NCBI GenBank assembly: GCA_020536535.1
Contig: JAHLWZ010000163.1
Coordinates: 8,325-72,324, forward strand
Origin: Pelomyxa schiedti
Taxonomy: Eukaryota > Protista > Evosea
DNA length: 64,000 nucleotides
Direction: 5' to 3'
Position numbers and translations under genes: made by a program. Position 1 is the first letter of the stretch; every line of letters starts with the position of its first letter. The notes below the pieces were generated by a model. It ran no database searches. It was not told where the DNA came from and was given only the letters and a program-made list of their open reading frames with translations. Positions 55,363 to 62,794 of the stretch are shown one piece after another.

Positions 55363-57420
55363 TCAGCCGCTGAATGTAATGTGATCCCAAATGTCGAGCA
55401 GGGTTTTCATTGGAGGCCTGAGTGATGGCTTGGCAACAAGGCAACATGAAATAACCTGCCGTGCCCATAATGGCAACGCTACACGCTGCGGTTGTTCTCC
55501 CTCAGCAGTTGTTGATGTGGTTGACTCGGACACTGTTGCAACTTGGAACCTCTCAACCTCAAAGCAATTGTATCCTCCACATTCCAATAATTCCGGCGCT
55601 GTTTGAAGAGACATGTGGATCACTATTAGTTGCCGGGAATTGAATAGGAAAATTACCGGGGGTTGCAGAACTGAAAGATTTTTCGCGGGATACAGAACTG
55701 AATCCGCTGGTTGTTGAAGTGGCACAATTGCTTGCCGGGGCTGTGGATATTTTCCGAGGTCCGGGATTGCTTCTATTCGGTAATGATTTAGTAGTTGTTG
55801 ACCTGATATTTACAAAGGAGAGTGGGGCAACAACGTTGTGGACGAGAATCCCTTTTTTTTGTTGTGAGTAATGGTACCACTAGTAGTAGGTGCTTGGGGA
55901 GAAAAGAAAAGTACCGAAATTCCACACATCACCATGAGTGGTGGGAAGAGTGTCCCCTTGAATGATGCTTCTGGGCTCATGTTCCTAGGTTGGATGTATT
56001 TCAAAAGGTGAAGGAAGGGAAACACCTTTGCCCATGGGCTTGATCCTGCGGGATCCAATGAAATGATCAGAACATTTCCTGTGATTTTATATATTAATAC
56101 CGGAACAGCAGAAAGGGGAAGAGTGCACAAACCAACGTCCACCTCACCGTGGACAACGGCAGGACACTGACTGTGAGCAAGGCCAAATGCAACATCTCTC
56201 AGAATATGTTCCCGCACACACATTGGCAGAACTTCATCTGGTGGCACACCTCGGAGCTGTTGGTTGTCAAGGTACATCACTCTTAGGAGGTCTGCCATTG
56301 AGAGAATTTCGCGAGACTTTGTTGTTGTTGTGGTAAGAGGAAACAATTGAGGAATATCAAGGGGCCGAAGGCGTTCACTCATTCCCAGCAGTGTTGTTTC
56401 ATCATGCAAAGCCACCCCGCAGAACTTTGTGACATTTTGGTGGTCTGGAACGTTGTTCAGTGTGTTCACTTCTGGTATCAGCAATTCCAAACTTTCCAAC
56501 TTCCGAGTTTCTGTTGCCCCCTTTGGGTCGTTGCAATTGGAACACAACACTGTCAAATGGGGTGCAGTGGGTGGCCGTTCACTTCCGTCAAAATTCCTCT
56601 TGTAAAAAAAACTGTTGATTGTGAGTTGGGGAGAAAGAGCCCATTGGTATTCATACAGTCTTTTGAGTGCAAGGTCCTGTCATCTGAACTCGGATGCGAG
56701 TTACTTCCCAAATTTGCACCAATTACTCAGAGCATGCATGAATTCCGGGTGGCATAGTGACGTTTGTTGACGCAAACACATGGCATAGTCCAGACCCTGA
56801 TTTGTTTGAATGAAATGATGGGGGGGCTGTTGGCATTGGGGGTGGTGGAATTGGGGAATTTGTCTCTTCGAGCTACTGGGCCACATGGATACACACAGTC
56901 ACAAATAAGCTTGACAATTGGGGGGATTTATGAGGGACACCCGCCCAAAGACCTCCATTGGCACCAGTAATCGACCCGCGGGGGGGTTTTCCCAACCGGT
57001 TGGGCCTCCAGCTGGGAAATTGGGGATTGCTAGTCCCCGCGGGCAGCACTTGGTGCAAATGGAGGTGGGTCTCAAATGATGTGTCAAGCTTATTTGTACT
57101 GCTCTTTGGGATTGTGTACAGTGCGGCCGCTTCGAAGCAGACTTGTATGGGTTCCACCAGCATAGATGTTGAGGAGTGTGCAGGCAATTTTTTTCAGATA
57201 TCGGGTTCGGTTATATTCACCTGAACTGAACTGAACTGAACTTCACTCGTGATGTCAAAAAAAAAACCTGTTGATTGTGAGTTTGAGGGGAAAAAGTGCA
57301 TAGGTATTAATTCATACAGTATTGAACATCTGCCAGACAGGGGTAATGTGTAATGTGCAGATAATTCTGCTGCGGTCTCACATCAACCACAAACCGCACT
57401 CGTGAGCAGATGATATATAT
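55363..57420 (-). pseudogene. Degenerate TKL-type protein kinase fragment(s)
   Basis: EVNTLNNVPDHQNVTKFCG, HILRDVAFGLAH...VVHGEV, NVLI, NMSPEA, CCLVAKPSLRPPM. No intact Gly-loop, HRD or DFG; upstream part has stops; ~60-bp internal duplication (about 56600-56660 and 57255-57320). Confidence 0.55.
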
Positions 57421-57939
57421 GCAGGCTCTGTCTGGCTGTTCTAGATGCTGTGCATGTGCTTTGCTGGGGGCAAGAGATAGATCCCCCCCGCACTCGTGCA
57501 GTGTGGCACCAGCAGCTGGAGTGGTAACAGAGCCAGAGTCTGCGGCCGGAGAAGGGAGGGATGACCGGTAAGCCGGCGGCGGAGGCGGCGGAGAGGAGGG
57601 GCTGTCGTAGCCGGTGTCGTGATACAAGGAGGGGGGCGAGGACCGGGGGGAGCCAGAGGCACCGGCGGCGTCGGCGTAGGTACCTCTGGTTCTGTGTAAT
57701 TGTATGTTTGTTCTGTGTTGTATCGTCTGTTCACAATTCCAAATGGAAAGAGAACATTCCACCCACAATCTCTTCCAAAGGATTGGACAAGGCAATGTCA
57801 GGGGTAATAACCCAGTCTGCTGGCCTCGTGTTTTGCACAATTTCCTGGAAAACAGGCAAAGGAGGTTTGATGGCAGCCGTCGTTTCGCCCCTGCGAAACT
57901 ACCGTTCCGTTGAAAAAGTGCAGGTCACCGAAACCCACA

Positions 57940-59557
57940 ATGTCGTCGTCGAGCGTGGACACCACTACCGCCGCCGCTATTCCAGTTGCGCCCATGACAT
58001 TCTTTCAGTCAGTGTGGGACGGTGACGTGGGGGCAATTGACAGGATGCTCGCCCAAGGTGTGCACGTGAACGCCCAACCAAATGAAAGGAATAAAGTGGT
58101 GTGTGTGTGCCATGATCCCGGCTTCTTCTTCTTTTTTTTTTTTTTTTAATGCTCAGACTAAAACCCCCTTTATGTATTGGTTATTGTCATTGACGTGTGC
58201 AGACTGCACTGCACTATGCAGCTAGGGGTGGACAGACGGAGTGTATGCAACTGCTGTTTCAAAGAGGAGCTGACGTGAACTTCCAAGTGAGTGAACTTCT
58301 CGCTTAACCTTTCTAATCCTTTTTTTCCCCTATGCAGTGTGTATGTGAACCAAACTACCTCTCCGTCACCGTCTCACTGATTCCTCTCTTTTTCTCTCTC
58401 TTACCTGTATCTTTCATTTCTTGCAGGATGTATGACTCTTTTTCCACAACAATTTCACTCACTTCATCCATGGGTAATCTTTTTTTCTCATTTGTCGCAT
58501 GTATTTGGAAACTTGTTTCATTTTTGCTAGTCTGTATGCGAACTTCCCTCACAATAATTTCACTCACAATTATCTCAATTCCCATTACAATTTCGAACCC
58601 AATATAAAATATCTGAAAGTTAGTATGTATCTCCCGACTCTAATTAATTAGTTTCTCATTCCCAATTATGATGCTTTGGACCTCATTCCTTTCTGACAGC
58701 CTGTATGTAACCCTTCTTAGTTTTTTCTTTCCCATTCCAAAACACAATCTCATTTTAACAGATCGTATGTGAACTCCCTTTCTCCACTCATCTGGATTCC
58801 CTTCTCATCAAAATGAAATGATTTATCAATCACGGCGCTTGGAACCTGATTCACTTTCACGCAGACCGTATGTGAACTCTCCGCCCACAATATACTCACA
58901 TTTCTATGCTTCTCATACCGATCGTGATATTGGAACCGTTGGTTCATTTGTAACAGTTCGTATGTATTTCCCAAATTCTCTCCCCACAGCACACATGCAA
59001 ACTCGCACTCCCTTCTCATTATTCTAATCTCTTTTTCGCGATTACAGATTGTATGTAGTTTCGCCCGCCTTAAACCCTCATTTTCATCCTCAAATAATGC
59101 TGTTACTGATCCCGATTCCCTTTCTTTAGTTTGTATGTGCTCCTATACAACACAACAAAAAGGGTTAACGCGTTTCCAGACGGTATGTGAACTCAACAGG
59201 CCGTTCTCACTTTATTGACATATGTTCCCATTCTTCCGGAAAAATAACAGGGAGACGTATGTGCTCCTATTGCAGTATCGATTGTATTTTAACATTCCCC
59301 AAGACTCCTTTGCATGTGGCCTGCAGGACCGGACACCCAGAAGCTGTTAGGATTCTACTTGAACATCCAAACATTGATGTGAGCATCAAGGTATCTCCCC
59401 TATTCACTTTTTTTCCAGAAATTCATTCCCCCAAGAATGCCAAGGGCCAGACAGCCCTCGACCTTTGCAAGGATGATGAATGTCGCCAACACATGCTAAA
59501 AAAGGTTGTGTGCAATCCTCCCATCTTTTGTTTCTCATCTTCTCTAAGAAGCAATAA
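57940..59557 (+). CDS. Small ankyrin-repeat protein (about 3-4 repeats) whose second hairpin loop is encoded by a microexon array
   Basis: Exons 57940-58095 (..GVHVNAQPNERNK), 58203-58286 (TALHYAARGGQTECMQLLFQRGADVNFQ), 12 microexons, 59304-59390 (TPLHVACRTGHPEAVRILLEHPNIDVSIK), then NAKGQTALDLCKDDECRQHMLKK and stop at 59555-59557. Confidence 0.88.
58287..59303 (+). other. Array of eleven 3-nt and one 6-nt phase-0 microexons
   Basis: AG|exon|GTATG at 58338 TGT, 58427 GAT, 58531 TCT, 58620 TTA, 58700 CCT, 58762 ATC, 58865 ACC, 58957 TTC, 59048 ATT, 59130 TTT, 59180 ACG, 59251 GGAGAC, separated by pyrimidine-rich introns of 47-101 nt. Confidence 0.85.
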
Positions 59558-60665
59558 AGCGACACCGAAACGGCCAAGAACCACACAGCCTCTGATAAAA
59601 CCAGAAACAACTTTTTGATTGCTTCTAAGCCGAAACCAAAAACAAGAAGAAACGTCGCATCGTTCCTCGGGGCTGTCGAGAGTATTATGGGAACAAGTGC
59701 TGGTGCCCTGGGTGGTCGACCAAGCCCTCCCTTGCCGGCGACGCGGTCGCGTGCCCCTCCTCCGCACCGCCGAGGCGGCGTTCCCCCTGGTCGCCGTGTG
59801 TTGCAGGAGGAGGCGGGGAGGAGGGAGGGCCAGGGCGAAGGGAACGAGGGAGAGGAGGAGGGGGAGGGGGACGAGGGGGACAGGGAGCGGGGGAGAGGGT
59901 GGCGGTGCCGAGTGGGCTGGGCTACGGGGGACACCTGGAGAGGGCCAGGGTGTTTGTCGAGAGTAACTGGCGAGGCGTGGGTCGATTCGGATGGGACAGA
60001 ACCACGATACTTGTGGCTGCCTGGAAAAGGACACGCGGGTGGTGGGATCCCGGCCGGGGGAAGCATTCTTGTATGAGTATTTCATATTAGTAGTGTGTCA
60101 AACAGCTCGGCGACCATTGTGGGCCACCATTCTTCAGTGACAACGATGCAATTCACATGTTTTATGTTGAGGGCCATGGAAGCCCCTCAATGGGTGAGTA
60201 AGGTGCCAGTGAAATTGGCTCTCAAATCCAAAGTGCGCACATGAGCAGAAAGGGCTTCCAAGGGAGAAAGGGCTTGCTGCTCTGAAAATCTTTGATATGT
60301 TTTTTATTGTTCATATGGCAAGTCTTCAAGAGCTTTGCCCAGTGAGGAAAACCAAATTGCTGGGAACAAACAATTTCTATGTTGACACCTTCATTTCACT
60401 GGTTCTTTTTTTTATGTTGATATGTTGTGCCAACCACAGTCAACTCAGGAGCAATCTAATCTAATGTGTGGGCCACAGCCAGTTCATGTCATTGACTGGC
60501 CCCTCATCACACCAAACCCTGCTGTTGCTGTTGTGGTGGTGCAACATTGTGAGCCACCTTTTGTCACACCTCCACCACAAGTGCATGCCCAAAGATGGCC
60601 CTCCTGAATCAAAAAAAAAAAAAATTTACGGCCTTGCTTCGGAGAAACGGCGTTTGATATCAAAA

Positions 60666-62794
60666 ATGAGCACCCATCAAACGGCAACCGCGTTGGGTGT
60701 GGATGATTGTGCGGGGATTAGGGGGCTATGGAAGAACACCAAGGGCGCCGGGGCTGCGTCGCCGGGAATGGGGGCTGTTTGGGAGTGTGTTGATTACATC
60801 CAATTCGGCGACGCCNNNNNNNNNNNNNNNNNNNNNNNNNNNNNNNNNNNNNNNNNNNNNNNNNNNNNNNNNNNNNNNNNNNNNNNNNNNNNNNNNNNNN
60901 NNNNNNNNNNNNNNNGGGTGTGGATGATTGTGCGGGGATTAGGGGGCTATGGAAGAACACCAAGGGCGCCGGGGCTGCGTCGCCGGGAATGGGGGCTGTT
61001 TGGGAGTGTGTTGATTACATCCAATTCGGCGACGCCGTGGCGCGTGTGTGTTATGGGAGCGCCGACGCGAAGAAGGAAACTACAACGCTGAGCTACTCTG
61101 TGTGTGGGGTTTTTTTTTTTTTTTTAATTAATTAAATTAAAAATTAAATTATAACATAAGAAAAATTAAAAATAAAATTAAATTTAATAAATTAAATTTT
61201 TTCTTTGTGAAAAAGAGAAGTGAAAGTTAACATAGTGAAAAGATTGATGAAAGCGTTTGTCCAAAGAGGATACAATTTCGTTCAGGCTTTATGTATGGAA
61301 GAGGAATCTTCAAGGTTGAAAAGAGTGGCAAGCACATCCACACTCTGCAACTTCAAATGTGCGATTTGAGCTGTCCTGAGGAGGGCTGGCCAGAGGACTT
61401 TGAAGTGGATCCTCACAAGCACTATGTGCTCTTGGAATTATTTGCGGCATGTTTTCACATGTTATTATTATTCCCATGTCCTCCACTCACCTTATGTCAG
61501 CTACAACTGACTGGGACCTGGCAGAACGACACAGGTGGGCCAGCGAAGTCTCTTGTATTTGACGAGAACAGCAAAGTAACAGGGAGGGGAGTAGGTCTCC
61601 CAGACCCACCTGAACCAATAGATTTCAGGGTTTACTTTCTTTAGTGATGTTATAATCTTGTGTAACACAAGGTTTTATGCAGGTAGACAACACCACCCAA
61701 CCACTGCAGATTACGTTTATCTCACGGGATGGAGAAGCACCTGGAATCTACGAATTCTTGGATTCTTGCACTGTCAGAATTTGTGTTGGTAACCATACTG
61801 AGGGTAGGCCAACAGAATTCAAGGAAGTTGCCGGTAAATCCTACAGCTTATTCACGCTCCGCAAGACACCCAGCCTTGACGATGACACTTGCCCTCCTCC
61901 CGGCTGGGAGGTGGATGTATGTTTCTTCTGCTGTTGGTTGACAAAGAACAACCCACTTCCTCCAGCATGAACTTGATGGTGAATGGAAGGAGGAAGCCAC
62001 AGAAGATAGAGGCCTTGTATTTTGTGGTCCACAAGTGACAGTAAAAGGAGGCCCATGCCCGGGAACAATTGGCTGCCGGGTGTGTTTAAATCTCTGAATT
62101 GGATTCTGCCGCTCACATTCAACAATACAAACAAGCTCAACAAGGCAACAAACCCGCGGCAAATTACATTCTTCAAAGACGCAGCAGAAACTCTCTGCAT
62201 CTACAAGTTCCTGGATCCCAGTACTCTCAAGATTTGTCTGTGCAACACCACTGGCCCGAGACCAACCGACTTCGAGGTTATTCCGGGCTCACCCTACAGT
62301 CTGCTGACATACCGCAAAGTTCCGGACAACGTGGAATCTAACTGTGCGGAACAGGTCCATCCTCATTCCCCTTCCAATCACATCCCCTCACTCTTTCTTC
62401 CAGCATTCCGCTGAGATACTTGGTACCTGGTACGATTGTGAAGGACACTGCTTCTTGAGCTTCGATGGCCATACAATGACAACGAAATCTGAGACGGGAG
62501 GTTCGCCTGAAACAGTACCCTACACGGTTTGGTTTTAACCCGGGAACCCACTTACAAACTCAAACACAAAAGATTGACGAAACAACTACACCAAAGCGAA
62601 TCACCATTGGCGGTGTGGGAAGTACACCGTGGGTGATATCTGGTATATATGAGATGGTTGGCAGTGAAGCAATGAGGCTCTGTATCTGGGAAAGCAATCG
62701 ACCACCCCAAGAATGTGACAGGCCCACTGAGTTCCTTGAGGTGCCAGGAAGGCAGAAGATTTGCAGCTTGATAAGAAAACATCCTTTGGGCTGA
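60666..62794 (+). CDS. Protein with four tandem TIGR03067-like (Planctomycetes-type) domains; spans an assembly gap
   Basis: Four repeats of L.G.W...(K/V)D.T..P.(Q/R)I.F...GIY.(F/L)....L.IC....RPTEF, e.g. FRVDNTTQPLQITF...GIYEFLDSCTVRICVGNHTEGRPTEF. Confidence 0.72.
60816..60915. other. Scaffold gap (100 N) with ~120-bp identical sequence on both flanks
   Basis: 60696-60815 is repeated at 60916-61036. Confidence 0.95.

Follow-up and report, generated by a model that had tools for sequence, protein, structure and literature searches.

The stretch analysed here, a 64,000-nucleotide (nt) window on contig C163 of the Pelomyxa schiedti genome assembly, carries on its forward strand a small ankyrin gene in which two ankyrin-repeat exons are separated by 1,017 nt (58287-59303; all coordinates are those of the window unless a contig is named). 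A script scan of the window sequence resolves the gap between 58286 and 59304 into eleven exons of 3 nt and one of 6 nt, parted by 13 GT-AG introns of 47-101 nt. In order, the microexons are TGT, GAT, TCT, TTA, CCT, ATC, ACC, TTC, ATT, TTT, ACG and GGAGAC, and the introns measure 51, 86, 101, 86, 77, 59, 100, 89, 88, 79, 47, 68 and 47 nt. The scan reproduces exactly the microexon coordinates, triplets and intron lengths of a preliminary description of this DNA. The exon-intron map of the gene is as follows, where X1, X2 and X3 denote the RNA runs introduced below.

57940..58098, + strand: exon 1, from the start codon to a phase-0 donor, 53 codons; X2/X3 RNA over 57974-58097, joined to 58203; translation
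58099..58202, + strand: ordinary intron, GTGTGT..CAG, 104 nt; joint 58097>58202 (cut +1) in X2 and X3
58203..58286, + strand: exon 2, ankyrin repeat TALH...GADVNFQ, 28 codons; Pfam Ank E 1.9e-08, profile 4-30/33; translation; single-copy
58287..58337, + strand: array intron 1, 51 nt, GTGAGT..CAG; absent from X2/X3 RNA contigs
58338..58340, + strand: microexon 1, TGT (Cys); in order within the 39 letters of X2/X3
58341..58426, + strand: array intron 2, 86 nt, GTATGT..CAG; sequence and RNA contigs
58427..58429, + strand: microexon 2, GAT (Asp); RNA contigs
58430..58530, + strand: array intron 3, 101 nt, GTATGA..TAG; sequence and RNA contigs
58531..58533, + strand: microexon 3, TCT (Ser); RNA contigs
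58534..58619, + strand: array intron 4, 86 nt, GTATGC..AAG; sequence and RNA contigs
58620..58622, + strand: microexon 4, TTA (Leu); RNA contigs
58623..58699, + strand: array intron 5, 77 nt, GTATGT..CAG; sequence and RNA contigs
58700..58702, + strand: microexon 5, CCT (Pro); RNA contigs
58703..58761, + strand: array intron 6, 59 nt, GTATGT..CAG; sequence and RNA contigs
58762..58764, + strand: microexon 6, ATC (Ile); RNA contigs
58765..58864, + strand: array intron 7, 100 nt, GTATGT..CAG; final 39 nt (58826-58864) kept in the X1 intermediate
58865..58867, + strand: microexon 7, ACC (Thr); X2, X3 and the X1 intermediate
58868..58956, + strand: array intron 8, 89 nt, GTATGT..CAG; out in X1, X2 and X3
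58957..58959, + strand: microexon 8, TTC (Phe); TTC between 58867 and 59048 in X1, within the 39 letters in X2/X3
58960..59047, + strand: array intron 9, 88 nt, GTATGT..CAG; out in X1, X2 and X3
59048..59050, + strand: microexon 9, ATT (Ile); RNA contigs
59051..59129, + strand: array intron 10, 79 nt, GTATGT..TAG; kept in X1, out in X2/X3
59130..59132, + strand: microexon 10, TTT (Phe); RNA contigs
59133..59179, + strand: array intron 11, 47 nt, GTATGT..CAG; joint 59132>59180 in X1, out in X2/X3
59180..59182, + strand: microexon 11, ACG (Thr); RNA contigs
59183..59250, + strand: array intron 12, 68 nt, GTATGT..CAG; kept in X1, out in X2/X3
59251..59256, + strand: microexon 12, GGAGAC (Gly-Asp); RNA contigs; fills Pfam Ank positions before TPLH
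59257..59303, + strand: array intron 13, 47 nt, GTATGT..AAG; joint 59256>59304 in X1, out in X2/X3
59304..59390, + strand: exon 15, ankyrin repeat TPLH...NIDVSIK, 29 codons; Pfam Ank E 3.3e-08, profile 4-30/33; translation; RNA contigs
59391..59435, + strand: ordinary intron, 45 nt, GTATCT..AAG; joint 59386>59432 (cut +4) in X2/X3
59436..59504, + strand: exon 16, 23 codons; RNA contigs; translation
59505..59548, + strand: ordinary intron, 44 nt, GTTGTG..AAG; joint 59501>59546 (cut +3) in X2/X3
59549..59557, + strand: last coding piece, Lys-Gln-stop; RNA contig extends to at least 59608; translation

All array introns end in AG, and the donor is GTATG at 12 of them and GTGAGT at intron 1; the microexons thus conform to the pattern AG-NNN-GTATG in eleven cases and to AG-GGAGAC-GTATG in the remaining one. 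The pattern AGNNNGTATG occurs 17 times in the window compared with 4.99 occurrences expected from 100 dinucleotide-preserving shuffles, none of which reaches 17. Eleven of the occurrences in the window fall on the + strand inside 58336-59187, where our own arithmetic predicts about 0.04. No repeat is called by Tandem Repeats Finder at 58287-59303, and the array is therefore not a simple repeat, its units being too diverged. An Rfam search of 57000-60500 returned no RNA family. The microexons all consist of complete codons, so any subset of them preserves the reading frame. In 12 of the 13 introns the length is not divisible by 3, and an in-frame stop occurs in 10 of the 13. Retention of any array intron would thus be costly, which accounts for the invariance of the splice signals.

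Conceptual translation along the exon joints, from an ATG that is preceded by an in-frame stop to the stop codon, gives a product of 148 amino acids, to which the microexons contribute 39 of about 447 coding nt. Exons 2 and 15 score 34.5 and 33.8 bits against Pfam Ank (PF00023), well above the cut-off of 21.1, and an exon-by-exon Pfam search finds only Ank families. Between the two repeats the microexons supply the 13 residues CDSLPITFIFT and GD. Since Gln28, the final residue of exon 2, corresponds to profile position 31, the profile implies five more residues before TPLH; the inter-repeat loop of the predicted protein is accordingly 8 residues longer than the Pfam model expects. The preliminary description had assigned the canonical G-x before TPLH to the 6-nt exon, and GD does fill these Pfam Ank positions. 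We place the loop within the ankyrin fold on the basis of established knowledge of ankyrin repeats, in which the inter-repeat loop commonly contacts partners. A protein search with exon 1 gave generic ankyrin matches only, the best being 40% identical to a protein of 1,658 amino acids, with neither an orthologue nor a public model of the gene among them.

Transcript evidence and the source of the spliced RNA

We compared the region 56500-61500 with three single-cell RNA runs from one sample (X1-X3) and a DNA run (X4) of the same study. The P. schiedti libraries were prepared by a modified Smart-seq2 protocol with in-vitro polyadenylation (PMC10579272), a design that fits the template-switch oligo tails found at loose ends of the contigs and that would catch unfinished transcripts. 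Contigs from X2 (455 nt) and X3 (439 nt) match the window without mismatch over 57983/57974-58097, 58202-58286, 59304-59386, 59432-59501 and from 59546 onward. Between 58286 and 59304 both contain exactly 39 letters, which are all 12 microexons in genomic order and nothing else. The preliminary description held that at least some of the microexons are used, and that transcripts joining CAA straight to ACTCCT, or carrying an insert other than ordered triplets, would speak against it. In the public RNA contigs this direct joint is not seen, the 39 letters match the ordered triplets, and all 12 microexons are present in X2 and X3, so that its interpretation is supported by RNA. The array thus consists of twelve true exons, and every one of them is carried into the messenger RNA (mRNA) in genomic order. 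They are spliceosomal microexons in the usual sense of internal exons no longer than 30 nt, with GT-AG introns on both sides and a place in processed RNA.

A third contig captures the array while it is being spliced. The X1 contig (319 nt) comprises 58826-58867, TTC, 59048-59132, 59180-59256 and 59304-59387; introns 8, 9, 11 and 13 are out, while introns 10 and 12 and the 3' part of intron 7 are still in. This mixture of removed and retained introns demonstrates that the introns leave separately and not strictly in the 5' to 3' direction. At one point an intron between two 3-nt exons has already been removed, although the introns on either side of it are still there. Each local combination in X1 fits within a single 31-letter assembly word, as for the end of intron 10, TTT, ACG and the start of intron 12, and therefore existed in single molecules. 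The half-spliced complementary DNA ends with a template-switch tail at 58826 within intron 7, after the A of TTTAT and 39 nt before the acceptor. This end could mark a lariat branch point that stopped the reverse transcriptase, or it could just be a broken RNA end.

Could the joined form come from elsewhere, that is, from an intronless paralogue, a retro-copy or an assembly artefact, with the genomic triplets a mere coincidence? The evidence for it is in assembled contigs, and in the assembly searched (52,367,397 bases in 5,337 contigs) part of exon 59304-59390 recurs in two paralogous fragments, on C1240 (96%) and C3882 (92%), which cover exon positions 18-87 only. However, neither of them carries exon 2, and the single match of exon 58203-58286 in a genome-wide DNA search is the exon itself. 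The RNA contigs fit the array locus with no other letters, and the probability of a 39/39 ordered match by chance is negligible. X1 moreover links retained introns of this locus to joined microexons, which a retro-copy could not give, and the DNA contig from X4 follows the window colinearly from 56500 to 59841, the whole array included. A foreign source of the spliced RNA is hence very improbable. Even less credible is that the gap is one long intron removed stepwise, with the triplets as ratchet points that are lost from the mRNA. In recursive splicing, for example of Drosophila Ubx, successive steps take place at juxtaposed acceptor and donor sites and nothing is left in the mRNA. The close AG/GT sites of the array resemble recursive splice sites, and X1 shows that the stretch is indeed taken out in steps. 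While recursive splicing leaves 0 nt, the Pelomyxa array keeps 3 or 6 nt at each of its 12 sites; the 39 letters stay in the mature-looking contigs of X2 and X3, which refutes recursive splicing for the observed transcripts.

A different proposal concerns the purpose of the array and not its existence: cells might skip differing subsets of the in-frame microexons and so generate many loop variants from one gene. The frame tolerance of any subset, the well-known tendency of this part of ankyrin repeats to contact partners and the alternative splicing ascribed, in papers citing the original report, to codon-sized microexons of the truffle nank genes (see below) all favour this idea, and rare isoforms would be invisible in contigs. 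Yet X2 and X3 are both fully included, X1 retains introns and is not a skipped product, and no alternative joint across the array is reported among the contigs, in which only full inclusion and the one intron-retaining intermediate are observed. We thus consider an array that serves to generate diversity unlikely, and read it as twelve exons that are included together and whose introns are removed separately.

Splice signals and a model for intron removal

In models of splicing, very short internal exons are hard to recognise. GTATG follows all 12 microexons, in 10 of them as GTATGT, compared with none of the four normal exons of the ankyrin gene, whose donors are GTGTGT, GTGAGT, GTATCT and GTTGTG (Fisher p ~5e-4, own arithmetic). 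The last base before the donor varies along microexons 1-12 (T, T, T, A, T, C, C, C, T, T, G and C). As the exon side of the donor is a variable codon, recognition must depend on the intron side. The donor consensus of the genome did not emerge from hexamer counts in the window.

The genome contains 25 matches to the U1 small nuclear RNA (snRNA), 18 of them above the Rfam cut-off; the arm reads ATACATACCTG in 10 of these genes, is the canonical ATACTTACCTG in 7 and reads ATACGTACCTG in 1. The ACAUAC arm of the ATACATACCTG genes pairs perfectly with GUAUGU. Canonical and variant U1 genes often form divergent pairs about 300 base pairs (bp) apart (e.g. C455:34088-34542, C448:31375-31831 and C966:20769-21247).

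These features point to the following model. Each array intron of 47-101 nt would be recognised across itself (intron definition), and its invariant intronic GUAUG donor would pair with the ACAUAC arm of the variant U1 snRNA. From general knowledge of their footprints, U1 at the donor and the factors bound at the acceptor just before it would overlap when only 3 nt of exon lie between them. Such an exon can probably not hold both sets of factors at once, so that neighbouring introns would take turns; adjacent array introns are thus probably engaged and spliced in turn and not together. The pattern in X1 is mostly alternating (7 in; 8 and 9 out; 10 in; 11 out; 12 in; 13 out), which is what mutual exclusion would tend to give, in this single contig.

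Most array introns contain a TTCTCAT-like or TTCAY motif, often with one copy in the middle of the intron and another 10-15 nt before the AG. Judged from sequence, these motifs are possibly branch sites. Analysis of k-mer enrichment in the cassette introns yields only pyrimidine runs and the TTCTCAT-like motif. Six of the 13 array introns share GAAC at +7 to +10 after the donor.

Origin of the array, related arrays and neighbouring sequence

The array may have grown from a phase-0 intron before TPLH by tandem duplication of codon-plus-intron units, and would by now be old and diverged. Each added unit would have lengthened the loop by one residue with the frame intact. Sequence comparison makes such an origin plausible at this locus and weakly supports it: 17 of 18 bases near the 5' end, at corresponding positions, are identical between introns 3 and 4 (z 6.1), a motif near the 3' end recurs in introns 3 and 8, and introns 4 and 8 can be aligned starting at the donor. 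We also considered dispersal of mobile, introner-like introns and rejected it, as introns 3-4 and 7-9 have no other genomic copy; in a DNA search of the genome with E values up to 1 they match only themselves.

A genome-wide motif search, of the kind proposed in the preliminary description, finds other arrays. Triple arrays of the motif number 35 compared with 1 in a reversed-pattern control, and pairs 52 compared with 4, and the arrays are spread over about 25 contigs. At six or more of 11 other sampled array loci (C75, C176, C417, C530, C814 and C851) an ankyrin exon with TPLH or TALH ends the array. Some long arrays have no obvious ankyrin flank, namely C601 and one on C851. The former (C601:49382-50311) comprises 13 candidate single-codon exons reading NELIDDKTLDLIEL, and the latter, on the minus strand of C851, comprises 10 candidates reading IKPGYGEIMI; neither has an obvious adjoining ankyrin exon. 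To judge from these predicted arrays, the one-codon exon design may extend beyond ankyrin genes.

The paralogous fragments on C3882 (1-694, minus strand) and C1240 (6468-6537) are partial duplicates of the 3' part of the ankyrin gene. The C3882 fragment has kept the ATT and TTT units with their introns, but ACG, intron 12 and GGAGAC have been lost from it. The C1240 copy is the probable source of an X1 RNA contig that has A>G at 59357 and dissimilar sequence upstream.

Just downstream of the ankyrin gene lies a G-rich imperfect repeat (GAGGGA-type, periods 6-43) at 59807-59899, with no RNA contig over it. The X4 contig skips 60217-60533 and 60694-60916 and has small indels near 60594-60611; a run of N ends at 60915, and the disagreement with the window over 60217-60916 looks like an assembly gap or repeat. 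Within 60939-61446, the neighbouring gene on the + strand has an RNA 5' end with a template-switch tail at 60939 and a very AT-rich intron of about 143-149 nt that ends at 61242. A 6-letter insert at 61093/61243 in this gene was considered as a microexon and rejected, as it most likely arises from the masked repeat 61094-61200.

Comparison with known systems and implications

The genome paper of P. schiedti gives 7.43 introns per gene and mentions neither microexons nor ankyrin (PMC8887013). The closest known system is the nank (NACHT-ANK) family of the truffle Tuber melanosporum, which papers citing the original report describe as containing "dozens of 3 bp mini-exons" or "tens of codon-sized microexons" that are alternatively spliced (Iotti et al. 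2012, Fungal Biol 116:261, via PMC9815663, PMC4986451, PMC3689799 and PMC13449251). As known through these citing papers, the likeness lies in exon size, chaining and fold: both systems have many consecutive 3-nt exons in the part coding for ankyrin repeats, and both have them in multiple genes of one genome. The nank genes are, by the same accounts, fungal NLR-type genes with a NACHT domain, whereas the Pelomyxa gene is amoebozoan, encodes 148 amino acids and has ankyrin repeats only, without NACHT by exon-wise Pfam search. Their alternative splicing is described as a means of diversification, whereas full inclusion is the only form seen in the contigs of the Pelomyxa array. The preliminary description knew of no earlier account of eleven one-codon exons in a row. 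In view of the truffle genes, as the citing papers portray them, the Pelomyxa array is a rare but precedented design.

Other known microexons are more distant. The micro-exon genes of Schistosoma contain frame-preserving exons of 3-81 bp, with introns of up to 5 kilobases (kb), secreted products and alternative splicing (PMC10526429). They share with the Pelomyxa array runs of very short frame-preserving exons that build part of a protein, but their coding sequence consists mostly of microexons and their introns are long, while in the Pelomyxa gene the microexons form one loop of a conserved fold and are parted by short introns. Among animals and plants, a 3-bp exon is found in Drosophila homothorax (PMC7392893), exons of 3, 18 and 22 bp occur in RPS24 (PMC12207440), and plants have 1-nt exons and a 5-nt/12-nt pair, with strong conserved donors accompanying the smallest exons (PMC8831610). 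These cases have in common with the array that exons of 1-3 nt are accurately spliced, but they are single or two to three adjacent, are usually regulated and have long flanking introns, compared with twelve in a row in Pelomyxa. A literature search on 3-nt or single-codon exons and microexon arrays found, beyond truffle, only isolated cases or two to three adjacent exons, and a search for such exons in Archamoebae found nothing. Variant U1 snRNAs with an altered 5' splice-site arm are a further point of likeness, as the Pelomyxa genome encodes copies with the ACAUAC arm, although this match is a property of the genome and not of the array locus.

Taken as a whole, the best explanation combines twelve exons included in order, separate removal of their introns, splicing through intron definition and the variant U1 as proposed above, and, with weak support, growth by tandem duplication, and we hold this combination with high confidence. 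Several observations nevertheless weigh against it. The RNA evidence consists of assembled contigs from three runs of one sample rather than raw reads, and contigs lose rare variants, so that the full-inclusion contigs are compatible with rare skipped isoforms. The model in which neighbouring introns take turns draws on one intermediate contig together with general knowledge of footprints. With regard to origin, intron similarity within the array is barely higher than that between it and two other arrays (Mann-Whitney p = 0.056). Finally, the microexons resemble introns in base composition (T 41% and G 15%, compared with T 36% and G 13% in introns and T 20% and G 27% in large exons), which hints that constraint at the protein level is weak and which also accounts for the hydrophobic residues of the loop. 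In keeping with weak constraint, the loop may have no specific function.

A broader reading, which we offer as speculative and rather doubtful, is that chains of one-codon exons are a convergent, general route by which the recognition loops of ankyrin receptors grow and vary. It would have been taken independently in a fungus and an amoebozoan, would be enabled in Pelomyxa by intron definition of short introns together with a dedicated U1 variant, and skipping of subsets may add further variants.

Twelve adjacent microexons, eleven of them single-codon, are accurately joined in public RNA, and the captured intermediate shows that their introns are lost one by one. The array is thus a compact natural test bed (1 kb, 13 introns) for splice sites that lie 3 nt apart, for reliance on the intronic half of the donor and for the role of variant U1 RNAs. 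Loci of this kind would probably be mis-modelled unless microexon-aware methods are used. The truffle case, as far as it is described in the citing papers, is not a one-off, as the same architecture occurs in the same fold in a distant eukaryotic supergroup. This suggests a repeatable evolutionary route by which protein loops are lengthened one residue at a time.

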